Below, one piece after another: positions 2,033 to 12,679 of a stretch of 64,000 nucleotides of DNA; within the stretch, counting starts at the first letter, position 1; every line of letters begins with the position of its first letter. A program made the position numbers and the translations under genes. The DNA lies in the sequence record MW218148.1, one strand, 5' to 3'. The notes under the pieces are model-generated. The model was not told the DNA's origin and did not search any database. It was given only the letters and a program-made list of their open reading frames with translations.

Positions 2033-2080
2033 ATCCCCTAACCTTATTAATTTAAGGTTAGGGGAATTTTATTTTTTTTT
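2033..2080. terminator. Bidirectional terminator, ATTAATTT-loop family
   Basis: CCCCTAACCTT-ATTAATTT-AAGGTTAGGGG between convergent genes; identical copy at about 29268. Confidence 0.8.
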
Positions 2081-3748
2081 TTATTCTATAGGTTCTTCTG
2101 GAGATTCTTCCACTTGTGAAGCAGTGATATTAATAGTAATATCTTTACTTACACTATCAGAAACAACCTTAACTTTAGCAGTTCCTTCAGCTTTAGCAGT
2201 TACAAGACCACTGTTGTTAACTGAAGCAAATTCAGTTCCTGAAGTAATAGAATAACTTACAGGGTTTCCTTTAGGATCTGTAGTTACTGTTAATTGTTGA
2301 GTTTCATTATCTTTCATATCAACACTATTAGGAGTAACTGTTAGACTTTTAGTCTTTACTCTAGTTACATTGACGTTAACTGTTTTACTAATAGAATCAG
2401 AACTTACTTTAACTTTAGCAGTTCCTATAGCTTTAGCAGTCACAAGACCACTACTATTAACAGAAACAACATTAGTTCCTTCAGTAATAGAATAATTTAC
2501 AGTGTTTGTAGATGGTTGAATTTTAACGTCTAACTGTTGAGATGATTCTGCATCTATGTTAATTTCTTCTGGAGTAACAGTTAGACTCTTAGTCTTTAAA
2601 CGACTTACATTAACCTCTACATTTTTAGAAACATTATCTGACTTAACTGTCACATTTGCAGTTCCTTCAGAAATACCAGTAATATTTCCTTTATTATCTA
2701 ATGAAGCAAATTCAGAACCGTCTTTTAATTCAAAGCTTACTGCTCTTCCTTCTGGTTCAGTAGTAACTTCTAATTTCTGAGTTTGTTCAGCTTCAATATT
2801 AACTGTCTCTGGAGTAACAGTTATACTTTTAGTTTGGTTAATACTTTCAAATTTTCCGTCTTTAGGATTATAAATAGAATATTCAAGTTTTTTATCAATT
2901 TCTTTTTGTATAGTTTCTTCACTTAAAATACGGATATTGAAATTAATAATATTATCTTGAATACTTCTCTCAAATACTTTAACTAAGACTTCGCCAGTTT
3001 TACTAAAGAATAATAAACGATTTTTATCTGCTTGATATTTAGTGTAACTTTCATCACTAATTTCTACATTTAATAATTGTATTAAGTTTTCTTTAGCTAC
3101 AGGAGTAACTTCTTTAGAATCAAAGTCTTTATAACCTAAAATTTTATCTAAAGGTAAAGTAGATTCTTTAAGAACGTTAATGTCTTGTTGTAATTGAACT
3201 AAACGACCTGTAAATTTACCGTATTCTTTAACTTTAATAAATACTGAATCAGAAACACGTTCAAATAAGTTTTTATGTCCTAAAGAAGTTGCGATATTGA
3301 ATTTATCTTGAGAATCTTTAGGGAAATATAATTTAACTTCGTATTCTTCATCTATTTCTAAATCTGAAGTAGGAATACTTAAGATTTCAGACTTAATTTC
3401 TTTAGCAGTATAAGTGTCTACTACAGTTTTGTCTGATAATTTAATTAAGTCAAATTTTAAAAGACCTAATACTTCACGATCATCAACTGGATTGATGTAG
3501 AAAGGAATATTGATAAATTTATCAGATTCTCCTTCAGTTTTAAAGTATACAGTTCTTCTATCATATTTAATCTTACCAGTTTCAGGAAGTGGTTTAACGT
3601 CAGTAATAGTCCAACCAGCTTGTTTTAAACTAGCTAAATCATTACCAGAAAGGATAACATCTTCTTTTGGTCCTTTTTCACCCAATCCTAAAAATGGAAT
3701 TAATTTTTCATCTAATAATTTTACTCTATAGTAGTTAGTAGTTGCCAT
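2081..3748 (-). CDS. Virion protein with three C-terminal Ig-like (Big_2) domains
   Basis: Three repeats of about 81 aa: S(I/L)TVTP...L.V...P...V.(F/Y)...G...SV...G.(I/V)T....G.A.V.V.SD.VSK.V.(V/I)NV. Confidence 0.85.
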   Translation of the reverse strand: MATTNYYRVKLLDEKLIPFLGLGEKGPKEDVILSGNDLASLKQAGWTITDVKPLPETGKIKYDRRTVYFKTEGESDKFINIPFYINPVDDREVLGLLKFDLIKLSDKTVVDTYTAKEIKSEILSIPTSDLEIDEEYEVKLYFPKDSQDKFNIATSLGHKNLFERVSDSVFIKVKEYGKFTGRLVQLQQDINVLKESTLPLDKILGYKDFDSKEVTPVAKENLIQLLNVEISDESYTKYQADKNRLLFFSKTGEVLVKVFERSIQDNIINFNIRILSEETIQKEIDKKLEYSIYNPKDGKFESINQTKSITVTPETVNIEAEQTQKLEVTTEPEGRAVSFELKDGSEFASLDNKGNITGISEGTANVTVKSDNVSKNVEVNVSRLKTKSLTVTPEEINIDAESSQQLDVKIQPSTNTVNYSITEGTNVVSVNSSGLVTAKAIGTAKVKVSSDSISKTVNVNVTRVKTKSLTVTPNSVDMKDNETQQLTVTTDPKGNPVSYSITSGTEFASVNNSGLVTAKAEGTAKVKVVSDSVSKDITINITASQVEESPEEPIE

Positions 3749-3768: not shown

Positions 3769-4242
3769 TTATTGATTTTGCAATAATAACTCGATTAAGT
3801 CTTTCTTACGAGCATTGTTCGCATATTCGATTTCTTTAGAATCTAATTCTTCTTTAAGTTCAGCAACAGTGAATTCATTTAAGTCTTCTTCTGTAACTTC
3901 AACTTCTTTAGCTTCTTCTTTAGACTCTTCTTCAGTTTCAGCTTCTTCCTCTTCTTGAGATTCAGGTTCTTCTACTTTTTCTTCAATTTTCTCATCAGCT
4001 TTATCCTCTACCGCTTCTGATACTTCTTGATCTTCAACTTTAGTTTCTTCTTCCTCTTTTTTACTACTAGGATATTCATAGTCTTCGTCAACAATAGTAA
4101 CATGTAAACCTAAACGTCTGAATAAACGGATTTGTGAACCTGAAGCTTGGAAAGGTTTAACAAAAGGACCTTTACCTTTACCAGGTACAAAAGCTTTTTC
4201 GTTAATGATAATGAAATTATTATCTTCTCTGAAATTTAACAT
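3769..4242 (-). CDS. Acidic virion-cluster protein with C-terminal HeH/LEM/SAP-like helix pair
   Basis: C-terminus LNEFTVAELKEELDSKEIEYANNARKKDLIELL; Glu-rich linker; N-terminal module shared with 8797..10077. Confidence 0.6.
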   Translation of the reverse strand: MLNFREDNNFIIINEKAFVPGKGKGPFVKPFQASGSQIRLFRRLGLHVTIVDEDYEYPSSKKEEEETKVEDQEVSEAVEDKADEKIEEKVEEPESQEEEEAETEEESKEEAKEVEVTEEDLNEFTVAELKEELDSKEIEYANNARKKDLIELLLQNQ

Positions 4243-5287: not shown

Positions 5288-6244
5288 TTAACTAAATGTT
5301 CCCCATGCTGGACCAACACGTTTACCATTACTGTTAGATTTACCAACAGGTACATAAACATATTGACCATTTAGTTTACCTGAAACCCAGATATAACCAT
5401 CGAAATCTTGAATTTCATCATACTTAATTGACTGTCCTTTTTTAAGAAGAGGACCTTGAGGCCATCCAGTCCATGGACCACCTTTACGAGTTACAATACC
5501 TACTGATACACCACATTTAAATGTAGCTTTTTCAGTTTTCCATAGGATACCTGCAGAGTTACGTTTCCATGTAGTAGAAGTTTCATTAGTTGTTTTAGCA
5601 GGTTTAGGTGTAGCTTTGGTTTTAGTTTCTGTCTTTTTAACTGTATCAGCTTTTTTAGCTGTTGAAGTTGTAGCACCTGATTTCATGTAAGCTAATACTT
5701 TCTTATCTACATTACTAACACTACGAGACATACCACATGCAGCTAATAAGTTACCCGGATCTTGCTTATCTGCTTGAATATCCTGATGTCCAGGCATATT
5801 AGTCTCAGCGTTAACTTTTTCAGTCTTACATAAATAAGCTAAGATTCTACAGTAGTTATCGAATGATTTTAATGAACGAGTTCTATCAGTGAAGTAACAT
5901 CCTTCCACTCCAATAGCTCCATCATTAGCATCAATACCATACCACTGATTATCTGTAGGTGTATTATACATAACGTGCCATGCTTTTTCATCTAAAGGAA
6001 CACAAATAATACATTCTTTATCATCAACGAAAATATGAGCAGAAGCAGTAGCGTTCCAATCAATATTATACGTATTTTTATAATAGTCTACATTATTTTG
6101 TGCAGTCGTATTAGGATTACCAGTGTCATGAGCAACAATGAATTTAGGGCCAGTTAATTTATCTCCAGCTCTACGAGTACCAATAGGTAAGAAGTCTGTA
6201 TATACAGGAACTCCGTTCCAAGTACCAATGTGTTTTTTAGCCAT
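5288..6244 (-). CDS. Endolysin, N-acetylmuramoyl-L-alanine amidase (Amidase_2) + SH3b
   Basis: IVAHDTGN, SAHIFVD, AWH, IGVEGC, GHQDIQADKQDPG Zn-amidase motifs; SH3b highly similar to that of the neighbouring CHAP lysin. Confidence 0.9.
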   Translation of the reverse strand: MAKKHIGTWNGVPVYTDFLPIGTRRAGDKLTGPKFIVAHDTGNPNTTAQNNVDYYKNTYNIDWNATASAHIFVDDKECIICVPLDEKAWHVMYNTPTDNQWYGIDANDGAIGVEGCYFTDRTRSLKSFDNYCRILAYLCKTEKVNAETNMPGHQDIQADKQDPGNLLAACGMSRSVSNVDKKVLAYMKSGATTSTAKKADTVKKTETKTKATPKPAKTTNETSTTWKRNSAGILWKTEKATFKCGVSVGIVTRKGGPWTGWPQGPLLKKGQSIKYDEIQDFDGYIWVSGKLNGQYVYVPVGKSNSNGKRVGPAWGTFS

Positions 6245-6272
6245 AATTAAATTTTTCCTCCTTGAATTCTTA

Positions 6273-6284
6273 TATTAGTTTGTT
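6273..6284 (-). promoter_or_regulatory. Late promoter AACA-N6-TA
   Basis: AACA aactaa TA, 29 nt upstream of the amidase start. Confidence 0.6.
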
Positions 6285-6502
6285 TCTTCTTCTGTAGAAC
6301 TCCAAACATCAGTAGACATAATATCTAATGCTTCAGGAGCTTCTACTATTTGAACTTCTTCATTTTCATGTAAATTATTTGATAGTATCTCAGCATATTC
6401 TAAGTGACATATTGTCAAAGTTCCATCTACAGATTTTCTCCAGTGTTCAGTATTATAACCTAATTTATCAAAAAATTCTACATTTGCAATAGCAAACTTC
6501 AT
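6275..6502 (-). CDS. Small protein closing the LamG cassette (possible chaperone or cap)
   Basis: ATG at 6502 overlaps the upstream TAA (TAATG) with SD AAAGGTGG; 75 aa, MKFAIANVEFF... Confidence 0.6.
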   Translation of the reverse strand: MKFAIANVEFFDKLGYNTEHWRKSVDGTLTICHLEYAEILSNNLHENEEVQIVEAPEALDIMSTDVWSSTEEETN

Positions 6503-7239
6503 TACAATTTCCACCTTTCTTTTTCCAAATCAAAGTTATGGTTTATTTCTTCTTCAGTAAGTATTCTATCGTATATCCTTACGGTTTTAAATAATGTATT
6601 ATTTTTATCATTTACAGCTCGAATAATTTCTAAATCTAATCCCATTAAAGATATATTCTTACCAGTTGTATCACTATTAACACTACTTTTACTCATATTA
6701 TTACCATTAATAAAAATATTACGTTCTAAAATTTCCCCACCTGAAAGAGTAACGATCACATGTTGTAATCCAATATTACTTTCGGGGAAAGAGTAATACT
6801 CATGAAATAAACCAGTTGAATTATTTATATGCAAATCTAATTGACCATAGTGAAATATTAAACTGACCCTATCTGAACCATTAGCTAAAAAAAGTAAATA
6901 CTGCCAGTTTATTTTACTATCGTAAATATCAAATACTAATTCTAAAGTTAGATCTTTGTTTTTTCTACGAATAGGATTTTTACTTTTAATATAATCGTCA
7001 ACACCATCAAATTTTAAACCTTCTCCGGTATATCCACTATCATTAGTATAATTGAATCCAAATAAGTTACTATCGCTATCGTTTCCACTAAGGTCTTTTA
7101 AAGTATCTTTATTGGTATCATTGTTATTTATACCTTTTAATTCATACCATAATAATAGATTATCTTTAACTGGATTAGGGTAAATGATATCATTACCTTT
7201 ATAAAGTAAATTAATAGGTTTATTACCTAAACTGATCAT
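6502..7239 (-). CDS. LamG/concanavalin-A-like module 3 (putative receptor-binding protein)
   Basis: YPNPVKDNLLLWYELKG...LKDLSGN...LKFDGVDDYI...VRIYDRILTEEEINHNF, Laminin_G_3-like pattern. Confidence 0.75.
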   Translation of the reverse strand: MISLGNKPINLLYKGNDIIYPNPVKDNLLLWYELKGINNNDTNKDTLKDLSGNDSDSNLFGFNYTNDSGYTGEGLKFDGVDDYIKSKNPIRRKNKDLTLELVFDIYDSKINWQYLLFLANGSDRVSLIFHYGQLDLHINNSTGLFHEYYSFPESNIGLQHVIVTLSGGEILERNIFINGNNMSKSSVNSDTTGKNISLMGLDLEIIRAVNDKNNTLFKTVRIYDRILTEEEINHNFDLEKERWKL

Positions 7240-7242
7240 TAA

Positions 7243-7959
7243 TTATAACCCCCATCTCTCTTTTTCTATTTTATAGTCGTGTTGTATTTCTTGGTCAGTT
7301 AATGCTCGGTTGTAAGCTTTAACAGAAAGCATTTTACCTGTTAAATTTGTATTTCCTGATACCCATTTTCCTAACTTAGTTAGTTTTACTTCTCTAGTAG
7401 AGATTTCAGTGTTTACTGTTGATAGTAGTTCATCGTTTCCATATAGTTTTAAAGTTTTTGTATTATCGTCTAAAGTCATTGTTATTACTACTTTAGATTG
7501 ATTGTTTTGTTGCATTTTATAGAATAAAATATTACTATTAGATGTTGCACTTATTTGCTTGTCTGTATATACCGAACAGTGTAAAGCGTTATAATTTCTA
7601 CGCATGTAAAAGGCTTGCTGGTCAAAACCTGCAAAAAATTGTACATTTGCTGAAAAGTCCATATCTAAAGTCATAGTTAAAGTAAATGAATTACCTAAGA
7701 ATACGTCAGTTGATAAGTCATCATCAATATTATCAAATTTAAGACCATCATTATATCCACTATCATCTGTATAAGAAAAGTTTTGTAACGTTCCATTGTT
7801 ACCTTTACCGCTTAAATCTTTAGCAGTATTCTTACTCACATCACTATTTTTCATACCTTTAAAGTCATACCACAACACTAATCCATCTTTAATGGGATTT
7901 GGATATGTTAATTCATTACCTCTATATATGAAATTTATTGGATAGTTTCCTAATTTCAT
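7243..7959 (-). CDS. LamG/concanavalin-A-like module 2
   Basis: YPNPIKDGLVLWYDFKG...KDLSGKGNNGTL...LKFDNIDD...KAYNRALTDQEI. Start at 7959 via ATGA overlap with the upstream stop (track start 7971). Confidence 0.75.
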   Translation of the reverse strand: MKLGNYPINFIYRGNELTYPNPIKDGLVLWYDFKGMKNSDVSKNTAKDLSGKGNNGTLQNFSYTDDSGYNDGLKFDNIDDDLSTDVFLGNSFTLTMTLDMDFSANVQFFAGFDQQAFYMRRNYNALHCSVYTDKQISATSNSNILFYKMQQNNQSKVVITMTLDDNTKTLKLYGNDELLSTVNTEISTREVKLTKLGKWVSGNTNLTGKMLSVKAYNRALTDQEIQHDYKIEKERWGL

Positions 7960-8780
7960 CTCAAATCCCACCTTTTCTTCTCTATCTGATAATTATGCGC
8001 TACTTCCGCTTCAGATAAAACTCTATCATAAATTTTTAAAGAGTACATTTCATGTTCAAATCTTCTATAATATACGTCAGCACTACCCTGTCCGAAGAAA
8101 GTTATTAAATCTTTTTCTTGAGGGGTTGTGATAGTTATGTCATTCAATGGTTTCTCATCTTTTTTGGCACCATTCACATATAGAATTAATTTATCGTTTT
8201 TATCTAATGTAGCAGTTATATGGAACTCATCTCCGTATTTGTACCCTCCTATCGTGCTGTGAGAATACGCACTTCTTCCACCTTCAGCACCATAATAAGT
8301 GGATGCTGAAACAACAAATTCATCAGATGAAGTTATATTAAAGTCCTTTATAAACTGTATCCAAAATCTTCCGTAAGTTTTATTTGTCATAAATATTTCT
8401 GAACCTTGAGTCATTATTTTTTCTGTCATTTTCAAAGATATTTCTACACTAAATTTTTGACCGTTGTTTATTTTCTTCATATCTAATGTTTCAACCGTGT
8501 TATCTGGGTACTTTATAACAGGAATTAATCTGTCATCTATACCATCAAATTTAAGGCCTTTGTTTCCATAACCACTCTCATTTGTATAAGCGAAGTTAAG
8601 TTGTTGAGCTTCTAAATTACCATTACCGCTTAAATCTTTAGTGACACCCTTATTTACATCACTATTTTTCATACCTTTAAAGTCATACCATAAAACTAAT
8701 CCATCTTTAACCGGATTAGGATAAATCAATTTATTTCCTTGATATAAAAAGAATGCATCTAAACTTCCCATATTTATCAT
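7956..8780 (-). CDS. LamG/concanavalin-A-like module 1
   Basis: YPNPVKDGLVLWYDFKG...KDLSGNGN...LKFDGIDD...LYVNG...KIYDRVLSEAEV. Confidence 0.75.
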   Translation of the reverse strand: MINMGSLDAFFLYQGNKLIYPNPVKDGLVLWYDFKGMKNSDVNKGVTKDLSGNGNLEAQQLNFAYTNESGYGNKGLKFDGIDDRLIPVIKYPDNTVETLDMKKINNGQKFSVEISLKMTEKIMTQGSEIFMTNKTYGRFWIQFIKDFNITSSDEFVVSASTYYGAEGGRSAYSHSTIGGYKYGDEFHITATLDKNDKLILYVNGAKKDEKPLNDITITTPQEKDLITFFGQGSADVYYRRFEHEMYSLKIYDRVLSEAEVAHNYQIEKKRWDLR

Positions 8781-8796
8781 AATATAACCATCCTTT

Positions 8797-10077
8797 CTAT
8801 ATAATGAAATAAAGAGTGTTAGGATCCTTTTCAGCTAAAGAATCATATTCATCTCTAGTATATACTTTAGGCGGTACTGATACTCCTGGATCACCTTTAG
8901 GACCTTGATCACCTTGAGGACCTTTTATTGAAATTTGTTTGGCATAAGTATTTGTACCAGTTTTCTTATATAAGTCACCATTATTAATTAAAACATAATC
9001 ACCAGTTCGGTATGAAGTACTTCCGCCATTAGTATCAGTAGGAGCAGTTGCAATGTTTGCAGTATATATAGAATAACCTATAGCACCCGTTGACCCTACA
9101 GCACCTCTAATACTATACTGCTTAGTATAAGTATTAACGCCAGTTTTCTTATATAAGTCACCATTATTAATTAAAACATGGTCACCGATACGATAAGATT
9201 CATTACCGCCATTAGTATCAGTAGGAGCAACTGCAATATTAGCTGTATAGATAGAGAATCCTTGTGGACCAGTTGGACCTTGAGGACCTGGATCACCTTC
9301 ATATATTGAAGCATTTTCTACCATATAATTTTTAAGGTTGGTTTTGTAATCCCCAATAGTATTTTCAAAATTAGTTATCTTAGTATTAAAAGATTCTTGA
9401 GCTAACTTTAATGTTTCACTCTTTTCTCTAATCTCAGATAACTTTTCTTCAACTCTAATAACATCATTTTCCATGTTCTTAATATAGTTAGCATTTTCGC
9501 TAAGCTTTTCCATCTCATCATTAAGAGACATAGCATTATTAAAGTTACTTTGGAAGTTATTTTTAACTGTTTCAAAACTGTTTAATTGCTCTTTAAGAGA
9601 GTCTAATTTATTCTGAGTTTCAGAGACTACATTATCAATCTCTTGTCTACCGGATTCAATTTCACCTTTTTTATCAGTAACTATTTTATTGAATTGCTCT
9701 AGTCCTTGAATGTATTCATTAAGTTCTTCATTACCAACTGAATTATCTTTAATTTTCTCTAATACGTCATTAATATTCTTTTCAATAGCAGAACTATCAG
9801 ATACCATTATTCTTATTTGTTTGAAAGTTTCGTTTATTTGTAGATATTTTTGTTCTATGAATTTTTCAGTAGATTCAAAAGTAGCTACTTCATAAACACC
9901 GTCTTCATTAATATCTTCATAAGAAGAACTAGATACAATATTATATTGTATTCCCATAAGTTGGTATAATTTTATTAAATCTTTATTAATATAAAACGGT
10001 TTATTAATTGGTCCCATACCTTTATTAGGTATAAAAGTTTTATGTGGTACAGTTATCAATATTTTATTTTCATCCAT
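8797..10077 (-). CDS. Fibre protein: N-terminal shared module, coiled coil, collagen G-X-Y segments
   Basis: Heptad-rich centre, GDPGPQGPTGPQG and GPQGDQGPKGDPG, 61-aa internal duplication, C-terminus YTRDEYDSLAEKDPNTLYFII typical of phage fibres. Confidence 0.75.
   Translation of the reverse strand: MDENKILITVPHKTFIPNKGMGPINKPFYINKDLIKLYQLMGIQYNIVSSSSYEDINEDGVYEVATFESTEKFIEQKYLQINETFKQIRIMVSDSSAIEKNINDVLEKIKDNSVGNEELNEYIQGLEQFNKIVTDKKGEIESGRQEIDNVVSETQNKLDSLKEQLNSFETVKNNFQSNFNNAMSLNDEMEKLSENANYIKNMENDVIRVEEKLSEIREKSETLKLAQESFNTKITNFENTIGDYKTNLKNYMVENASIYEGDPGPQGPTGPQGFSIYTANIAVAPTDTNGGNESYRIGDHVLINNGDLYKKTGVNTYTKQYSIRGAVGSTGAIGYSIYTANIATAPTDTNGGSTSYRTGDYVLINNGDLYKKTGTNTYAKQISIKGPQGDQGPKGDPGVSVPPKVYTRDEYDSLAEKDPNTLYFII
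8900..9260 (-). repeat. 183-nt (61-aa) tandem duplication in the fibre gene
   Basis: 40-nt identical blocks at 8957-8996 and 9140-9179; protein repeat G(F/Y)SIYTANIA.APTDTNGG..SYR.GD.VLINNGDLYKKTG.NTY.KQ.SI.G. Confidence 0.9.
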
Positions 10078-10115
10078 GATGATTTAGCCCTCTCTTTCTA
10101 AATATATGCAATATA

Positions 10116-10196
10116 AACCCCCTAATACACGTTATAAACCGATGATTTTTCTATATAGGTTTGCGGCTCATCGTTTAAAAATGTATTAGGGGATCT
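10116..10196 (-). other. Long (about 80 nt) hairpin in the 5' leader of the fibre/LamG operon
   Basis: CCCCTAATACA / TGTATTAGGGG outer stem with an inner TAAAC.GATGA / TCATCGTTTA stem, just downstream of the late promoter at 10218. Confidence 0.6.
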
Positions 10197-10206
10197 GGAA
10201 TTATTA

Positions 10207-10218
10207 TATAATAATGTT
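10207..10218 (-). promoter_or_regulatory. Late promoter AACA-N6-TA
   Basis: AACA ttatta TA upstream of the fibre operon. Confidence 0.6.
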
Positions 10219-10225
10219 ATATGAA

Positions 10226-12679
10226 TTACGAGTTAATAATTTTGAATTTATTTTCATTATTAAAATCTTGTTCTAATCTTTCTTCATTAGTTAATATTTC
10301 TTGGAGGTCTTTTGTATCCATATCAAAATTAACTTTCTTACCATTGATAGATAGGGAAGATTCACTTAGAATAATATCTTTAGAAGTATTTAAATCATTG
10401 ATATTTTCATCTAAGTATTTCTTTACTCTAACTTTTTCTTCATTAGTTACGTTCTCATAAGCTTCAAATACCATATCTTCATAGTATTCTTCTAACGATT
10501 CTTCGTAACCTTCATAAAGAACATCATCTTTGTTTTTCAAGTCAAACATAATGCTTTCTTCTAATGCTTCTAAATCAACTTCTTCATTTAGAGTATCTTT
10601 AACATCTTCGTTAACTTCATCTAGTGGATTAAGTAAGTTTTCTAATAAACCTGATTCAGATTCATTATTAACACGTTGAACTACATTCATACTAAATTCT
10701 TCTTCAAGATTTTCTAATGAAATTTCTTGGTCAGTATAGAATTCTTTAAGTACTTTATTTACTTTAGGTTCAACTACAACTACTTTCTTAAATCCTTTAC
10801 CAAAGTCAACTTTATTAACTAGTAGAGAAGAAGGATTATAAACTTTAGGTAATTCATCTAAATAAGATTCTTTATGAATAACAATATCTACACGTTTACC
10901 TAATGATTCAGATAAAGCATTGGCATATCTAACTAAATCTTTAGCTGTATAAGTTTCATTAACTTGGTCTTCATTAACTGTTTTAGTTTTAAATTCAACA
11001 TCAGTAGAACCACAATTCTCACAAACTAGTTCATCTTCGTTAGTATTAGGATCTATCTCTTCCTGAACCCCACATTCATTACAGATAACTTCTCCAACTT
11101 CTTTAGAGTTTTGTAATGCTTCTTCAATTTCTTCATTACAATTCTCACAAACTAGTTCATTTGATTCATTCATAGTTAATTTATTTCCACAGCTTTCACA
11201 AACCATTTTACCATTTTCAATTTTACCAGTTTCAGATAAGAATTGTCTAATAGTATTGATAGATTCATTAGTAACAAATATTTGTTTTTGGTCTTTGCTT
11301 TCTAACATAAATGAATTTAATAGGTTTTCATGAATCTTTTCTGAAACACCTTTAAATGATTTAACAGTAGCAAAGCTAAATTCTTCTCCAATAGCAATGA
11401 ATGGGAATGCTTTGTTTTTATCATCTACATAATTTTCATTAGCGATGATATCAACTTTTCCATCTTTTTTAACATCATCTACTTCTGGAGTACCAATAGT
11501 ATAACCTATTTTGGCATCAGTAGCTAGAATTCCATTTCTTAAATCCACGTAAGTAAATTCTGGAGCTGGATCTTTTTCATATAAATATGGACCAGGACTA
11601 GCACTTTCAGTTACAGCACCAGATACTGAAGCTGAACCATTTGCTGCTGACATTCCACCGTCACTAACAGAACTTGCACTTACATTAGAATTAGAAGTGC
11701 TTACTGAAACTGAGTTTTGAGGTCCAAAAGTAGTAGGTACTATCATTTGAGAGTCTAAGAACTTAGCTCTTAATTCAGAGTAACCAGGTCTAGTTTCTTC
11801 ATCATCATCTTCATCGAACAAAGATCCTTCTTCAATTTCATTATCTGAATTAGCTACATCAGTAGAAACAGTCTCATCTTTATCTAATATAATTGGTTCA
11901 TCATAATCAGGATGATCAGAGTCAATTATTTCTACTCCATCTTCTTCCTCAGCATCTTCAATTTCATCAAGATCATCAGATTCTTCATCGTCAAACTCTT
12001 CTTCTTTGATTAGTTCATTGAACATTTCTTCAATTTCTTCAGCATCATTAGGAATATCTCTATCTAAATCTTCATCAAAATCATCTTCAAATAAAAACAT
12101 ATCTTCATTAATGTCTTCTGAAATAATATTTCTTTTAACTAAACTTTTATGAATTTTTTCCATAACTTTTTCTTTTTTAGCTATAACAGATTTTGAATGA
12201 ATATCTTTCTTCTTAATTTTTCCTTTTTTAGTTTTACCTATAATACCTTTAAGACTATCAATATTCTTTATAAAAGTATCTTTGATTCCCTCATTAGAAT
12301 TTTCAAATTCTTCTTTAAGATTTCCATTTTTATCTTTAATTTCTTGTACTGTAATATTTGATTCTTTTAAACGGAATAATCCTTCATTCAATTCTCGTAA
12401 ATTTGCTGAAGCTACCGCTCGGAATAAATCATTCAAGACCTTCAATAATTCTTTTTCATTTCTGAATTTTCTTACAACAAAACTAAGATCTATAATATCT
12501 AATTCTTGATTTACAAATAATACACATGACATTAAGTTTTTACCTTCTATATAAAATAATGTATCTGTGACAATTTCATAACCATTTTCTCTCAAAGAGT
12601 CTGAGTATGGCATAACTGTTTCAAATAAACCATCATTAAATGCATCCAATGTTTTTTTAAGTTCTTTATTTTTTCCCAA
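10226..12679 (-). CDS. Large acidic putative prohead core/internal head protein with Zn-ribbons
   Basis: Four CxxC pairs (CESC, CENC, CNEC, CENC), D/E-rich tracts, many hydrophobic-x-E motifs (TNES, MNES, VNET, LSES, LNEE, LEES). Confidence 0.5.
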   Translation of the reverse strand: MGKNKELKKTLDAFNDGLFETVMPYSDSLRENGYEIVTDTLFYIEGKNLMSCVLFVNQELDIIDLSFVVRKFRNEKELLKVLNDLFRAVASANLRELNEGLFRLKESNITVQEIKDKNGNLKEEFENSNEGIKDTFIKNIDSLKGIIGKTKKGKIKKKDIHSKSVIAKKEKVMEKIHKSLVKRNIISEDINEDMFLFEDDFDEDLDRDIPNDAEEIEEMFNELIKEEEFDDEESDDLDEIEDAEEEDGVEIIDSDHPDYDEPIILDKDETVSTDVANSDNEIEEGSLFDEDDDEETRPGYSELRAKFLDSQMIVPTTFGPQNSVSVSTSNSNVSASSVSDGGMSAANGSASVSGAVTESASPGPYLYEKDPAPEFTYVDLRNGILATDAKIGYTIGTPEVDDVKKDGKVDIIANENYVDDKNKAFPFIAIGEEFSFATVKSFKGVSEKIHENLLNSFMLESKDQKQIFVTNESINTIRQFLSETGKIENGKMVCESCGNKLTMNESNELVCENCNEEIEEALQNSKEVGEVICNECGVQEEIDPNTNEDELVCENCGSTDVEFKTKTVNEDQVNETYTAKDLVRYANALSESLGKRVDIVIHKESYLDELPKVYNPSSLLVNKVDFGKGFKKVVVVEPKVNKVLKEFYTDQEISLENLEEEFSMNVVQRVNNESESGLLENLLNPLDEVNEDVKDTLNEEVDLEALEESIMFDLKNKDDVLYEGYEESLEEYYEDMVFEAYENVTNEEKVRVKKYLDENINDLNTSKDIILSESSLSINGKKVNFDMDTKDLQEILTNEERLEQDFNNENKFKIINS

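Follow-up and report, generated by a model that had tools for sequence, protein, structure and literature searches.

In the T-even phages, with their gp37/gp38 tip adhesins, and in phages with adaptor-mounted tailspikes (K1-5, CBA120 and G7C), the tip is separate from the shaft, and horizontal exchange is made possible by docking ends that are conserved while the binding parts vary; these are Gram-negative systems with proteins and folds unrelated to those described here. The tripod of phages TP901-1 and Tuc2009 consists of a holder, BppU, and separately encoded carbohydrate-binding proteins, BppA and BppL, and in Tuc2009 it can mount two binding modules together (PMC4742702). The closest solved relative of the fibre studied here is FibU of phage 80alpha (gp68, PDB 6v8i), the Phietavirus upper baseplate fibre, which carries a PF24243-type tail at its extreme C-terminus after a collagen-like segment. 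FibU is a thin, non-essential baseplate fibre that ends in a 4-nm knob (PMC7048315), and its distal half and any partner protein are not visible in the 80alpha structure. In the 80alpha-related phage phiETA, a 131-aa ORF with adaptor-like hairpin repeats at its start follows FibU after 5 nt. Modular receptor-binding proteins with a shared adaptor are known in kind, and the cassette reported here is probably of this type.

The window, a stretch of 64,000 nt from MW218148.1, comes from the Staphylococcus jumbo phage vB_StaM_SA1 (hereafter SA1). Five genes on the minus strand (ORF212-216) encode, in this order, a fibre, three LamG heads and a small ORF, and the cassette is probably a host-attachment kit of modular build, because related phages reshuffle its heads. 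The genes are as follows:

8797..10077, minus strand: fibre gene ORF216, 426 aa, an ORF labelled hypothetical in the MW218148 annotation
7956..8780, minus strand: head 1, LamG1, 274 aa, core type A, from its Laminin_G_3 match
7243..7959, minus strand: head 2, LamG2, core type B, 238 aa if counted from the ATG at 7959, from its AF2 model
6502..7239, minus strand: head 3, LamG3, 245 aa, core type C, from its Laminin_G_3 match
6275..6502, minus strand: small partner ORF, 75 aa, from its conservation across cassettes

The original prediction, made from the letters of the window, described one collagen fibre followed by three swappable LamG heads. Its conserved starts and ends, divergent cores, fibre tail and 35-nt block stood, whereas its account of the LamG2/LamG3 junction and the term collagen fibre did not, and the claim of many fused fibres was not confirmed. 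It also left out the conserved 75-aa ORF at 6275-6502, although this lies within the range that it covered.

The fibre (ORF 8797-10077, minus strand, 426 aa) ends in KDPNTLYFII as predicted, and its last 20 residues (407-426 of 426) match Pfam PF24243, Phage_tail_C (E 1.3e-6). The parts of the gene are:

9934..10071, minus strand: N-terminal domain of ~46 aa (aa 3-48), a candidate virion anchor common to ORF209
9328..9885, minus strand: alpha-helical coiled-coil shaft, aa ~65-250, from PDB and weak Pfam matches
9259..9297, minus strand: first collagen-like run of four G-X-Y triplets, aa 261-273, a 9-nt periodic repeat
8912..9277, minus strand: 61-aa unit present twice in tandem (2 x 183 nt, 75% nt identity), from repeat analysis
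8884..8922, minus strand: second collagen-like run of four G-X-Y triplets, aa 386-398, from repeat analysis
8800..8874, minus strand: C-terminal tail, aa 402-426 (...PPKVYTRDEYDSLAEKDPNTLYFII), matching PF24243 and the proposed head socket

The N-terminal domain is 37% identical to ORF209 (3769-4242; BLASTP E 1e-10), matches phrog_23231 as ORF209 does, and is kept in all jumbo-phage orthologues. The shaft gave weak Pfam matches to Myosin_tail, PspA and DUF7118, and its PDB matches were prefoldin coiled coils. The description as a collagen fibre holds for the two short G-X-Y runs that flank the duplicated unit but is too strong for the fibre as a whole, which is mostly coiled coil (residues ~65-250), and the Pfam Collagen profile was not reached by the SA1 fibre. 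The 61-aa duplication is found only in SA1 and in P0002, a metagenomic relative. Over residues 3-278 the fibre has 54% identity with UFVDC4_00062 of phage DC4 (782 aa), a protein annotated as a tail fibre and found with one peptide in DC4 virion mass spectrometry (MS); the alignment stops just past the first collagen-like run, and similarity is lost afterwards. Judged from these alignments, the fibre is a chimera, with the proximal 278 aa the jumbo lineage's own and the distal part FibU-like. The prediction of a split fibre was supported, in that the SA1 fibre has no distal globular domain, whereas its DC4 orthologue, encoded at the same locus, carries a pectin-lyase-like one within a single chain.

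The three heads are, as had been proposed, LamG paralogs with conserved ends and unrelated cores. Their identity to one another is 54-71% over the N flank, falls to 16-18% across the core and reaches 41-44% over the C flank. Against the PF13385 (Laminin_G_3) cut-off of 27.6, LamG1 (31.0 bits) and LamG3 (35.1 bits) score above and LamG2 (25.8) slightly under. However, the AF2 model of LamG2 (pLDDT 90.8, pTM 0.89) is an all-beta jelly-roll sandwich with a terminal helix (222-236) and an N-terminal hairpin (strands 11-13 and 16-19), and its top BFVD matches are ConA-like lectin proteins (TM 0.64-0.74); adaptor hairpin and lectin fold are both confidently predicted. The conserved start is an extra beta-hairpin only over its first ~22 residues, whereas from about residue 28 much of the conserved sequence consists of lectin-fold strands and the terminal helix. 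Among 89 family representatives, conservation was sharply bimodal: the most common residue had a share of 0.57-0.72 at flank positions against 0.23 in the core, and in some heads foreign cores such as GH113 sit between both flanks. The fold, together with these relatives with glycoside-hydrolase cores, suggests that the heads are putative carbohydrate-binding proteins.

The original prediction placed the Shine-Dalgarno sequence of each next gene inside the 3' end of the preceding head, and these sites were located at the head junctions:

7968..7974, minus strand: AAGGTGG for head 2, in the K-R-W codons of head 1
7248..7253, minus strand: weak GGGGGT for head 3, in the W-G-L codons of head 2
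6511..6517, minus strand: AAGGTGG for the small ORF, in the K-R-W codons of head 3

Stop and start overlap, as proposed, in ATGA at LamG1/LamG2 (7956-7959) and in TAATG at LamG3/small ORF (6500-6504), but LamG2 and LamG3 are separated by an in-frame TAA and a 3-nt spacer before the ATG. The coupled junctions are also kept in relatives, in line with the predicted translational coupling, and this comparison shows that every head's 3' end holds the ribosome-binding site for whichever gene comes next.

The same cassette, in which a PF24243-ending fibre is joined by the small ORF and by up to three heads (at least one) that bear the adaptor, was found in jumbo phages, a Kayvirus (SAP23), the Mammaliicoccus phage phi36 and many siphophage or prophage contigs. 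Of 28 loci with a tail-motif fibre, spread over several unrelated phage lineages, 26 have an ORF with the adaptor that begins at most 16 nt after the fibre. These fibres share their last ~45 residues and have unrelated N-termini, namely the jumbo anchor, BppU_N in siphophage-like contigs (e.g. P0003-P0007), or, in SAP23, phi36 and other contigs, a region without a family match or with a weak BppU_N match only. Among the loci read, ~18 had one head, ~8 had two and SA1 alone had three. The idea that tail and adaptor motifs are contiguous in many single-chain fibres was not confirmed: one natural fusion (P0116) was found among the best 150 family representatives, and a targeted search added none. 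Its chain runs from fibre through tail motif, a ~17-residue linker and adaptor to LamG, with the small ORF downstream. Its model matched, at fold level only (12-17% identity), PDB entries for the lectin-like domains of trans-sialidases and of GH43 enzymes as well as the lectin-like subdomain found in clostridial neurotoxin/NTNH proteins, and the tail motif was not modelled in the AF2 monomer (pLDDT <50). The small ORF, always the final cassette gene and with an acidic C-terminus, is the most conserved one, with 59-70% identity among its jumbo, Kayvirus, phi36 and siphophage versions, while the copy next to the fused fibre-head gene is 37% identical; it had no family match in Pfam, PHROG or PDB.

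Across relatives the array is not invariant, and head number, order and cores vary. LamG1 shares 64-71% identity with heads from Machias, PB50, AH12 and LY01, which occupy slot 1 or 2 there. No head in the 50,697 phage records exceeds 35% identity to LamG3, but one in a metagenome contig (L033) is 84% identical and is followed by a small ORF whose Machias/AH12-like sequence is of the jumbo-phage type. The second head of phi36 matches LamG2 with 74% identity, which marks head 2 as a case of horizontal transfer. Recombination between constant flanks, also part of the original prediction, is supported because Machias and AH12 share a collinear frame (77-90% nt identity) in which the same slots hold different cores; in their N-terminal peptides, identical residues have identical codons in 12/12 and 11/11 cases. 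Comparison thus shows gain, loss, reordering and exchange of heads across unrelated phages, through recombination in the constant flanks and the collagen-like run.

The 35-nt block shared by heads 1 and 2 was confirmed as exact, with no other copy in the window and no match in shuffled sequences:

8656..8690, minus strand: copy 1, encoding WYDFKGMKNSDV in head 1, an exact match to 7838-7872
7838..7872, minus strand: copy 2, in head 2, an exact match to 8656-8690

Given 84% identity across the 130-nt flank, a run of at least 35 identical nt has P ~0.04, and the 26-nt core of the block is exact in six other cassettes. Among identical residues of the SA1 paralogs, codons are identical in 34/48 cases in the flank versus 12/20 in the core. 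Recent gene conversion inside SA1 may have occurred, with modest support. An invertible tail-fibre switch of the Mu Gin or P1 Cin type was rejected: the heads are co-oriented, inverted repeats are short and at chance level, there is no invertible segment, and neither the cassette nor the annotated genes next to it include a recombinase or invertase. A diversity-generating retroelement (DGR) target was likewise rejected, as long direct repeats occur only as the paralogs' coding N flanks and as the 183-nt duplication in the fibre, and no reverse transcriptase is annotated among the genes around the cassette. The reverse transcriptase of these phages is reported as not DGR-like (bioRxiv 10.1101/2020.12.14.422802).

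Considering these results, we propose, as somewhat the better bet, the following scenario, in which the five genes form an adhesin cassette that works like plug and socket. The proximal ~278 fibre residues, with the N-terminal anchor and coiled coil, would fix the fibre to the particle, and the distal fibre from the first collagen-like run would be a FibU-type end that stops in the ~25-residue PF24243 tail. Each head would be a single ConA/LamG lectin domain, of which the ~80 first and ~30 last residues are constant and the middle ~125 hypervariable; its start would form the beta-hairpin adaptor and first strands, and its end the last strand and terminal helix. The constant part of every head may fit the same socket on the fibre tail, and the three heads may therefore compete during assembly, so that one population, perhaps even one virion, would show several carbohydrate specificities. 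The small constant ORF may aid folding or mounting. The cassette presumably works without a genetic switch, with co-oriented, translationally coupled genes and neither invertase nor invertible segment.

Near-identical fibres are followed by 1, 2 or 3 heads, and a fixed stoichiometry is therefore not required; moreover, the same core type is found in different slots, and one kind of adaptor on all heads implies equivalent rather than distinct sites. These observations speak against a fixed multi-head assembly with all paralogs on each fibre, for instance one per trimer chain or as a Tuc2009-like tripod, so that the heads would act simultaneously within one organelle instead of as alternatives. 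We consider such an assembly unlikely, even though BppA and BppL have both been solved with BppU in one Tuc2009 tripod (PMC4742702), siphophage-type fibres of the family have a BppU_N domain, SA1 has exactly three heads on a collagen/coiled-coil fibre expected to be trimeric, and translational coupling of all heads favours comparable synthesis. An end-to-end chain, in which the fibre and heads 1, 2 and 3 form a beaded distal fibre, is very improbable. Natural single chains with two tandem LamG domains (P0011 and P0023) and the N-terminal peptide of jumbo-phage slot-1 heads, which differs from that of later slots, would agree with it; however, every SA1 head has the adaptor hairpin that the second domain of the tandem chains lacks, the small ORF is preceded by the same C-terminal end, and single-head cassettes put the later-slot adaptor type straight after the fibre.

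The proteins may also not be virion parts but soluble multivalent lectins of an accessory (moron-like) cassette, made late and freed at lysis, a reading to which we give slightly less weight than to the fixed assembly. Such lectins might coat wall debris or neighbouring cells, limiting progeny loss on dead cells or blocking competitors. The cassette is rare (7 of 50,697 phage records) and lies beside or after lysis genes in most lineages, often after the endolysin, or among the early genes near the terminal repeat of SAP23, positions typical of accessory rather than core structural genes; FibU, too, is non-essential (PMC7048315). ORF212-216 are absent from the 52 proteins of the published SA1 virion LC-MS/MS, which had low sensitivity, but this absence is weak evidence because the annotated tail fibres ORF114 and ORF122 and both tape measures are missing too. 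Against free lectins, the fibre's proximal 278 aa have their orthologue in a DC4 virion protein annotated as a tail fibre, siphophage versions begin with the baseplate-docking domain BppU_N, 80alpha FibU is on the baseplate, and signal peptides are absent. According to PMC10579305, tail-fibre chaperones typically lie just downstream of fibre genes and travel with them from phage to phage, and the LamG proteins could be assembly chaperones or transient fibre-tip caps rather than adhesins. This we find the hardest of all to credit, since the fibre tip is constant and the head cores are hypervariable, the reverse of what a chaperone matched to the tip would require, some heads have glycoside-hydrolase cores, and the small constant ORF is the better candidate.

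The single-chain fibres of DC4, PALS_2, S6, MarsHill and Madawaska have an orthologous proximal 278 aa and lie at the same place as that of SA1, between an acidic zinc-ribbon protein and an amidase (PMC10638138). In DC4-type fibres, however, the distal part is a covalent pectin-lyase-like beta-helix, with no tail motif, LamG genes or small ORF, and the DC4 fibre gene is directly followed by the amidase. The FibU gene, like the SA1 cassette, lies beside the lysis module, siphophage members of the cassette family have its BppU_N start, and the SA1 tail aligns to residues 369-388 of 390 in 6v8i, although weakly (E 1.1) and over a short stretch. Unlike FibU, the SA1 fibre has the jumbo-lineage anchor and coiled coil and no BppU_N (PF10651 unmatched), is without FibU's ~180-aa distal region, and has three LamG head genes and the small ORF downstream. 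SA1 would resemble the TP901-1/Tuc2009 tripod in combining a holder with separately encoded, putative carbohydrate-binding proteins, but here a jumbo myovirus would use a long fibre as holder, the LamG heads share a hairpin adaptor, and the arrays vary from 1 to 3; searches of Pfam, PHROG and the PDB, by sequence and by fold, linked none of the heads to BppL or BppA. Compared with T-even fibres and adaptor-mounted tailspikes, SA1 places several co-oriented paralogs with a common adaptor after a single fibre and adds a small partner that is constant. The split state of fibre and head is the norm in this fibre family, and the three-head array is what sets SA1 apart.

Phage SA1 (vB_StaM_SA1; MW218148.1) is a 260.7-kb jumbo myovirus with S. 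lentus as its isolation host, and window positions 6000–10300 match it at 100%. Its cassette comprises five minus-strand genes, all annotated 'hypothetical', followed by two endolysin genes, as listed here in transcription order:

8797–10077, minus strand: fibre, 426 aa, first in transcription order
7956–8780, minus strand: LamG1, 274 aa, second
7243–7959, minus strand: LamG2, 238 aa, third
6502–7239, minus strand: LamG3, 245 aa, fourth
6275–6502, minus strand: small ORF, 75 aa, fifth
After the small ORF: two endolysin genes, amidase-SH3_5 and CHAP-SH3_5

The original prediction that each head module carries the ribosome-binding site of its successor was borne out, in that the purine-rich site before the next gene is encoded by the K/E-R-W(-G) codons of the upstream head, and the head-to-next-gene gap is −4 to +3 nt in all relatives except phage LY01 (15 and 117 nt). 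The claimed overlaps are present at LamG1/LamG2 (ATGA) and at LamG3/small ORF (TAATG), each with AAGGTGG ahead, but not between LamG2 and LamG3, where the stop codon is in frame, a 3-nt spacer separates it from the ATG and a weak GGGGGT lies ahead. The 16-nt spacer between the fibre and LamG1 contains AAAGGA, and in siphophage fibres GAGGTG for the head is encoded by the final codons of the ...ISEV end. The K/E-R-W residues are kept even where no gene lies downstream, and many relatives have F instead of W, indicating that the ribosome-binding site is a secondary use of a protein motif. Programmed read-through or frameshifting to fuse the fibre with the first head was rejected, as the stop-to-start gap is 2, 3, 5, 14 or 16 nt among relatives and the frame is not conserved. 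Scanning for promoters and terminators within the cassette gave matches no better than those in shuffled sequences; these phages use their own RNA polymerases. The only strong terminator-like hairpin in 2–13 kb of the window (2034–2065) is 13 bp, G+C-rich and bidirectional, and marks the point where the minus-strand gene block ends convergently.

All three heads are Laminin_G_3/ConA-like. Conserved ends around divergent cores had been noted in them, and pairwise identity was indeed 54–71% in the N flank and 41–44% in the C flank, against 16–18% in the core. Conservation was likewise bimodal with sharp edges among 89 family representatives, the share of the commonest residue being 0.57 for residues 1–22, 0.72 for 23–82, 0.23 for 83–205 and 0.62 for 206–238. 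The AF2 model of LamG2, built with 88 homologues (pLDDT 90.8, pTM 0.89), consists of an N-terminal beta-hairpin (strands 11–13 and 16–19), a beta-sandwich and a terminal helix (222–236) bearing the ...EKERW... end, and the AF2 picture of the head part of P0116, a natural fibre–head fusion, agrees with it. Beyond approximately residue 28, what looks like a constant flank is made of strands belonging to the lectin fold, the hairpin (the adaptor) being the sole add-on. The head models match ConA-like lectin domains in fold searches; a toxin reading, raised by matches to the lectin-like subdomain of clostridial neurotoxin/NTNH, was rejected as generic ConA-like similarity (12–17% identity).

Foreign cores also occur within the frame. 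P0104 (contig L018, 4001–5941) has constant N and C flanks around a core with a Pfam match to glycoside hydrolase GH113, and P0145 keeps both flanks around another large foreign core. L018 carries one fibre, then two large heads. Furthermore, the hairpin adaptor is tandemly duplicated in L013 (5202–5999), L022 (408–1208), P0031, P0073 and P0076, and some relatives have two LamG domains per chain, the hairpin being absent from the second. Foreign cores, duplicated hairpins and tandem LamG chains show that the head ends behave like a frame and that the hairpin can be repeated; the duplications suggest that the adaptor is a shaft-like unit.

The fibre ends in KDPNTLYFII, as had been read from the ORF, and a match to Pfam PF24243 ('phage tail tip domain') covers its final 20 residues. 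The term 'collagen fibre' was too strong: two short runs of four G-X-Y triplets are present, flanking a duplicated 61-aa unit, but the chain is chiefly coiled coil. The duplicated 61-aa unit (window 8912–9277, minus strand) replaces the ~20-aa ...FKYSDFTEEQL...LKGEKGD-type repeats of phages Machias, AH12, LY01 and DC4, and metagenomic fragment P0002 holds both kinds of repeat. Fibre residues 3–278 are 54% identical to UFVDC4_00062 of DC4, with similarity ending just past the first collagen-like run; this 782-aa protein, annotated as a tail fibre and represented by one peptide in DC4 virions, runs on within one chain into a pectin-lyase-like domain, and the amidase gene comes directly after it. 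Phages PALS_2, S6 and MarsHill have only the proximal ~260 fibre residues in common with SA1, Madawaska has a shorter overlap (residues 3–182), and Machias, PB50, AH12 and LY01 show the SA1-like state at the fibre locus. On these alignments, the SA1 fibre is a chimera. The locus accordingly has two states, either a single-chain fibre with its own distal domain or the split cassette, in which LamG genes and the small ORF accompany a short fibre with a PF24243 tail.

The N-terminal ~46-aa domain of the fibre is also found in ORF209 (3769–4242, minus strand, 157 aa; 37% identity, E 1e-10), whose C-terminus has a HeH/SAP-like motif behind an acidic linker; the common domain points to one putative anchor with two different cargoes. 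ORF208 was considered as a further carrier of this domain and rejected, its similarity not being significant, which leaves only ORF209. ORF208 (2081–3748, minus strand) has 555 aa and three Ig-like Big_2 domains. The published SA1 virion MS places it among the most abundant proteins (41% coverage), the DC4 homologue was likewise detected, and ORF208 is probably a decoration protein. The gene directly upstream of the fibre (10226–12679, minus strand) encodes a zinc-ribbon-like, very acidic protein of 817 aa with four CxxC pairs; its position is conserved in DC4, Machias, AH12 and LY01, and it went undetected in virions.

Recombination between the constant flanks, proposed earlier as the source of head diversity, is seen when Machias is compared with AH12. 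The two are collinear at 85% nucleotide identity from the fibre into the head in slot 1 (the first position after the fibre), as far as its first ~245 nt. Collinearity returns at 77% from the C flank of slot 1 over the junction into the N flank of slot 2, and again at 90% from the C flank of slot 2 through the small ORF. Within this frame, slot 1 holds a 243-aa core type in Machias versus the 274-aa type A (that of LamG1) in AH12, and slot 2 holds type A in Machias versus type B (that of LamG2) in AH12. Same-slot genes with unrelated cores have identical codons at 12/12 and 11/11 of their identical N-terminal peptide residues. When module number, order and core were compared across relatives, the array proved variable, with one to three heads and type A in slot 1 (SA1 and AH12) or slot 2 (Machias and LY01). 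LamG2 and the second of the two heads in Mammaliicoccus phage phi36 are 74% identical (77% in nucleotides). For LamG3, 50,697 phage records yielded no close relative, but a head on metagenome contig L033, where the small ORF downstream is of the jumbo-phage type, is 84% identical to it. The 35-nt block reported as shared by modules 1 and 2 is exact and unique to these two places; with the 130-nt flank 84% identical, a run of this length is expected at P of about 0.04, and the evidence for a putative recent gene conversion within SA1 is only modest. The 26-nt core of this block is exact in six further cassettes and so offers a substrate for homologous exchange. Across the family, recombination between constant flanks is real. 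An invertible segment or shufflon and a DGR were both rejected.

In Kayvirus SAP23 (L005, 6473–7937), a mini-fibre of 171 aa is accompanied by a single head and the small ORF, located among small early genes by the long terminal repeat and far from the structural genes; in phi36, the endolysin is followed by a fibre of 229 aa with two heads and the small ORF. The cassette also occurs in four IMG/VR siphophage genomes and many metagenomic contigs, the siphophage fibres having a BppU_N domain first and collagen repeats after it. Scanning the genome collection with narrow degenerate patterns gave one prophage match only, in Mammaliicoccus lentus. SAP23 was the only Kayvirus record in the collection with a cassette match, and vB_SurM-PSU5 (139.8 kb) gave a partial small-ORF match. 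Among the loci examined, about 18 have one head, about 8 have two and SA1 alone has three. By its distribution, the cassette is a widespread mobile unit.

In the 28 loci whose fibre gene has the tail motif at its end, that gene always stops 0–3 residues past the ...LYFI (or ...LYLI) core, and an adaptor-bearing ORF begins within 16 nt of the fibre in 26, the head gene being disrupted in the other two. These are L012 and L026, of which one has a head without the N-terminal adaptor and one a head split in two ORFs, with the small ORF intact in both. In P0116, a single chain of 481 aa, a coiled coil and a diverged tail motif are connected through a ~17-residue linker to the adaptor and LamG, with the small ORF still downstream; a junction-centred word-index search found no other fibre–head fusion, so the split state is the rule. 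The small ORF had no family match in Pfam, PHROG or PDB. Fibre N-termini vary by lineage, and the last ~45 fibre residues, the head ends and the small ORF are common, as expected if the heads depend on the tail and a docking site specific to each lineage depends on the N-terminus; joint transfer of the genes on a single piece of DNA would look no different.

We infer that the heads dock on the fibre tail. In the AF2 model of P0116, taken as a stand-in for the complex, the lectin and adaptor are confident and the tail motif has pLDDT below 50. Published LC-MS/MS of CsCl-purified SA1 particles detected 52 proteins, including the neighbours ORF208 (abundant) and ORF218–220, without ORF209 and ORF212–217; both tape measures were missed as well, along with ORF114 and ORF122, which are annotated as tail fibres, and the list thus points to poor sensitivity for fibres. 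Soluble lectins outside virions, a reading to be set beside both this protein list and its poor sensitivity, are unlikely. The position by lysis genes, and among early genes in SAP23, fits an accessory cassette. A fixed multi-head organelle has a counterpart in the Tuc2009 baseplate tripod, which mounts two different carbohydrate-binding proteins together (PMC4742702); weighed alongside arrays that vary in head number and order, it is a minority reading to which we give roughly one chance in a handful. Heads strung in a beaded chain are improbable, even considering the tandem LamG domains of some relatives, and heads serving as chaperone caps are more improbable still.

Considering these results, we propose that the cassette is a plug-and-socket adhesin kit, the most likely mechanism in our judgement and one that we hold at slightly better than even. 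Heads with equivalent adaptors would compete for the fibre tail at assembly, with no genetic switch involved and the small ORF acting as an assembly helper, and diversity would arise from recombination in the flanks and in the collagen-like run.

Staphylococcal phage host range is usually credited to the main baseplate receptor-binding protein. The cassette bears on the role of FibU-type fibres, a question left by the 80alpha structure, and suggests that they are carriers of separately encoded, freely exchangeable lectin heads. The sequence rule of tail motif, hairpin adaptor and small partner allows heads now called 'hypothetical proteins' to be recognised. The cassette also documents gene flow of attachment modules, the phages involved being a jumbo phage, a Kayvirus and temperate phages that infect Mammaliicoccus and Staphylococcus. 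Should structural work confirm docking, the cassette would be a compact natural example of one shaft serving many binding specificities. More tentatively, the PF24243 tail, hairpin adaptor and MKF... partner might form a universal portable socket-and-plug standard in phages of Staphylococcaceae and other Firmicutes, by which siphoviruses, Kayviruses and jumbo myoviruses would freely trade lectin or glycosidase heads. In that case the 80alpha/phi11 FibU knob might be a similar adaptor protein with a gene of its own, and the three heads of SA1 might give mixed-head fibres and so underlie the multi-species host range of this phage.

The only solved relative, 80alpha FibU (gp68, PDB 6v8i), has the tail motif of the SA1 fibre at its chain end. 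Collagen-like and non-essential, this upper baseplate fibre has been visualised as thin fibres of 9 nm that bear a knob of 4 nm (PMC7048315). In phiETA (L036, 3001–4640), the FibU homologue ORF62 ends in the same tail motif and, after a 5-nt gap, ORF63 (131 aa) starts with two adaptor-type hairpin-like repeats, the LamG domain being absent; an ORF63-type protein may be the 4-nm knob on 80alpha/phi11-type FibU fibres. No description of the cassette, the adaptor or the small partner was found in the open-access papers searched. Modular receptor-binding proteins with conserved docking ends are already well known; the closest relatives or analogues of the cassette are FibU and the BppU tripods, and the SA1 array is the largest seen in this analysis.
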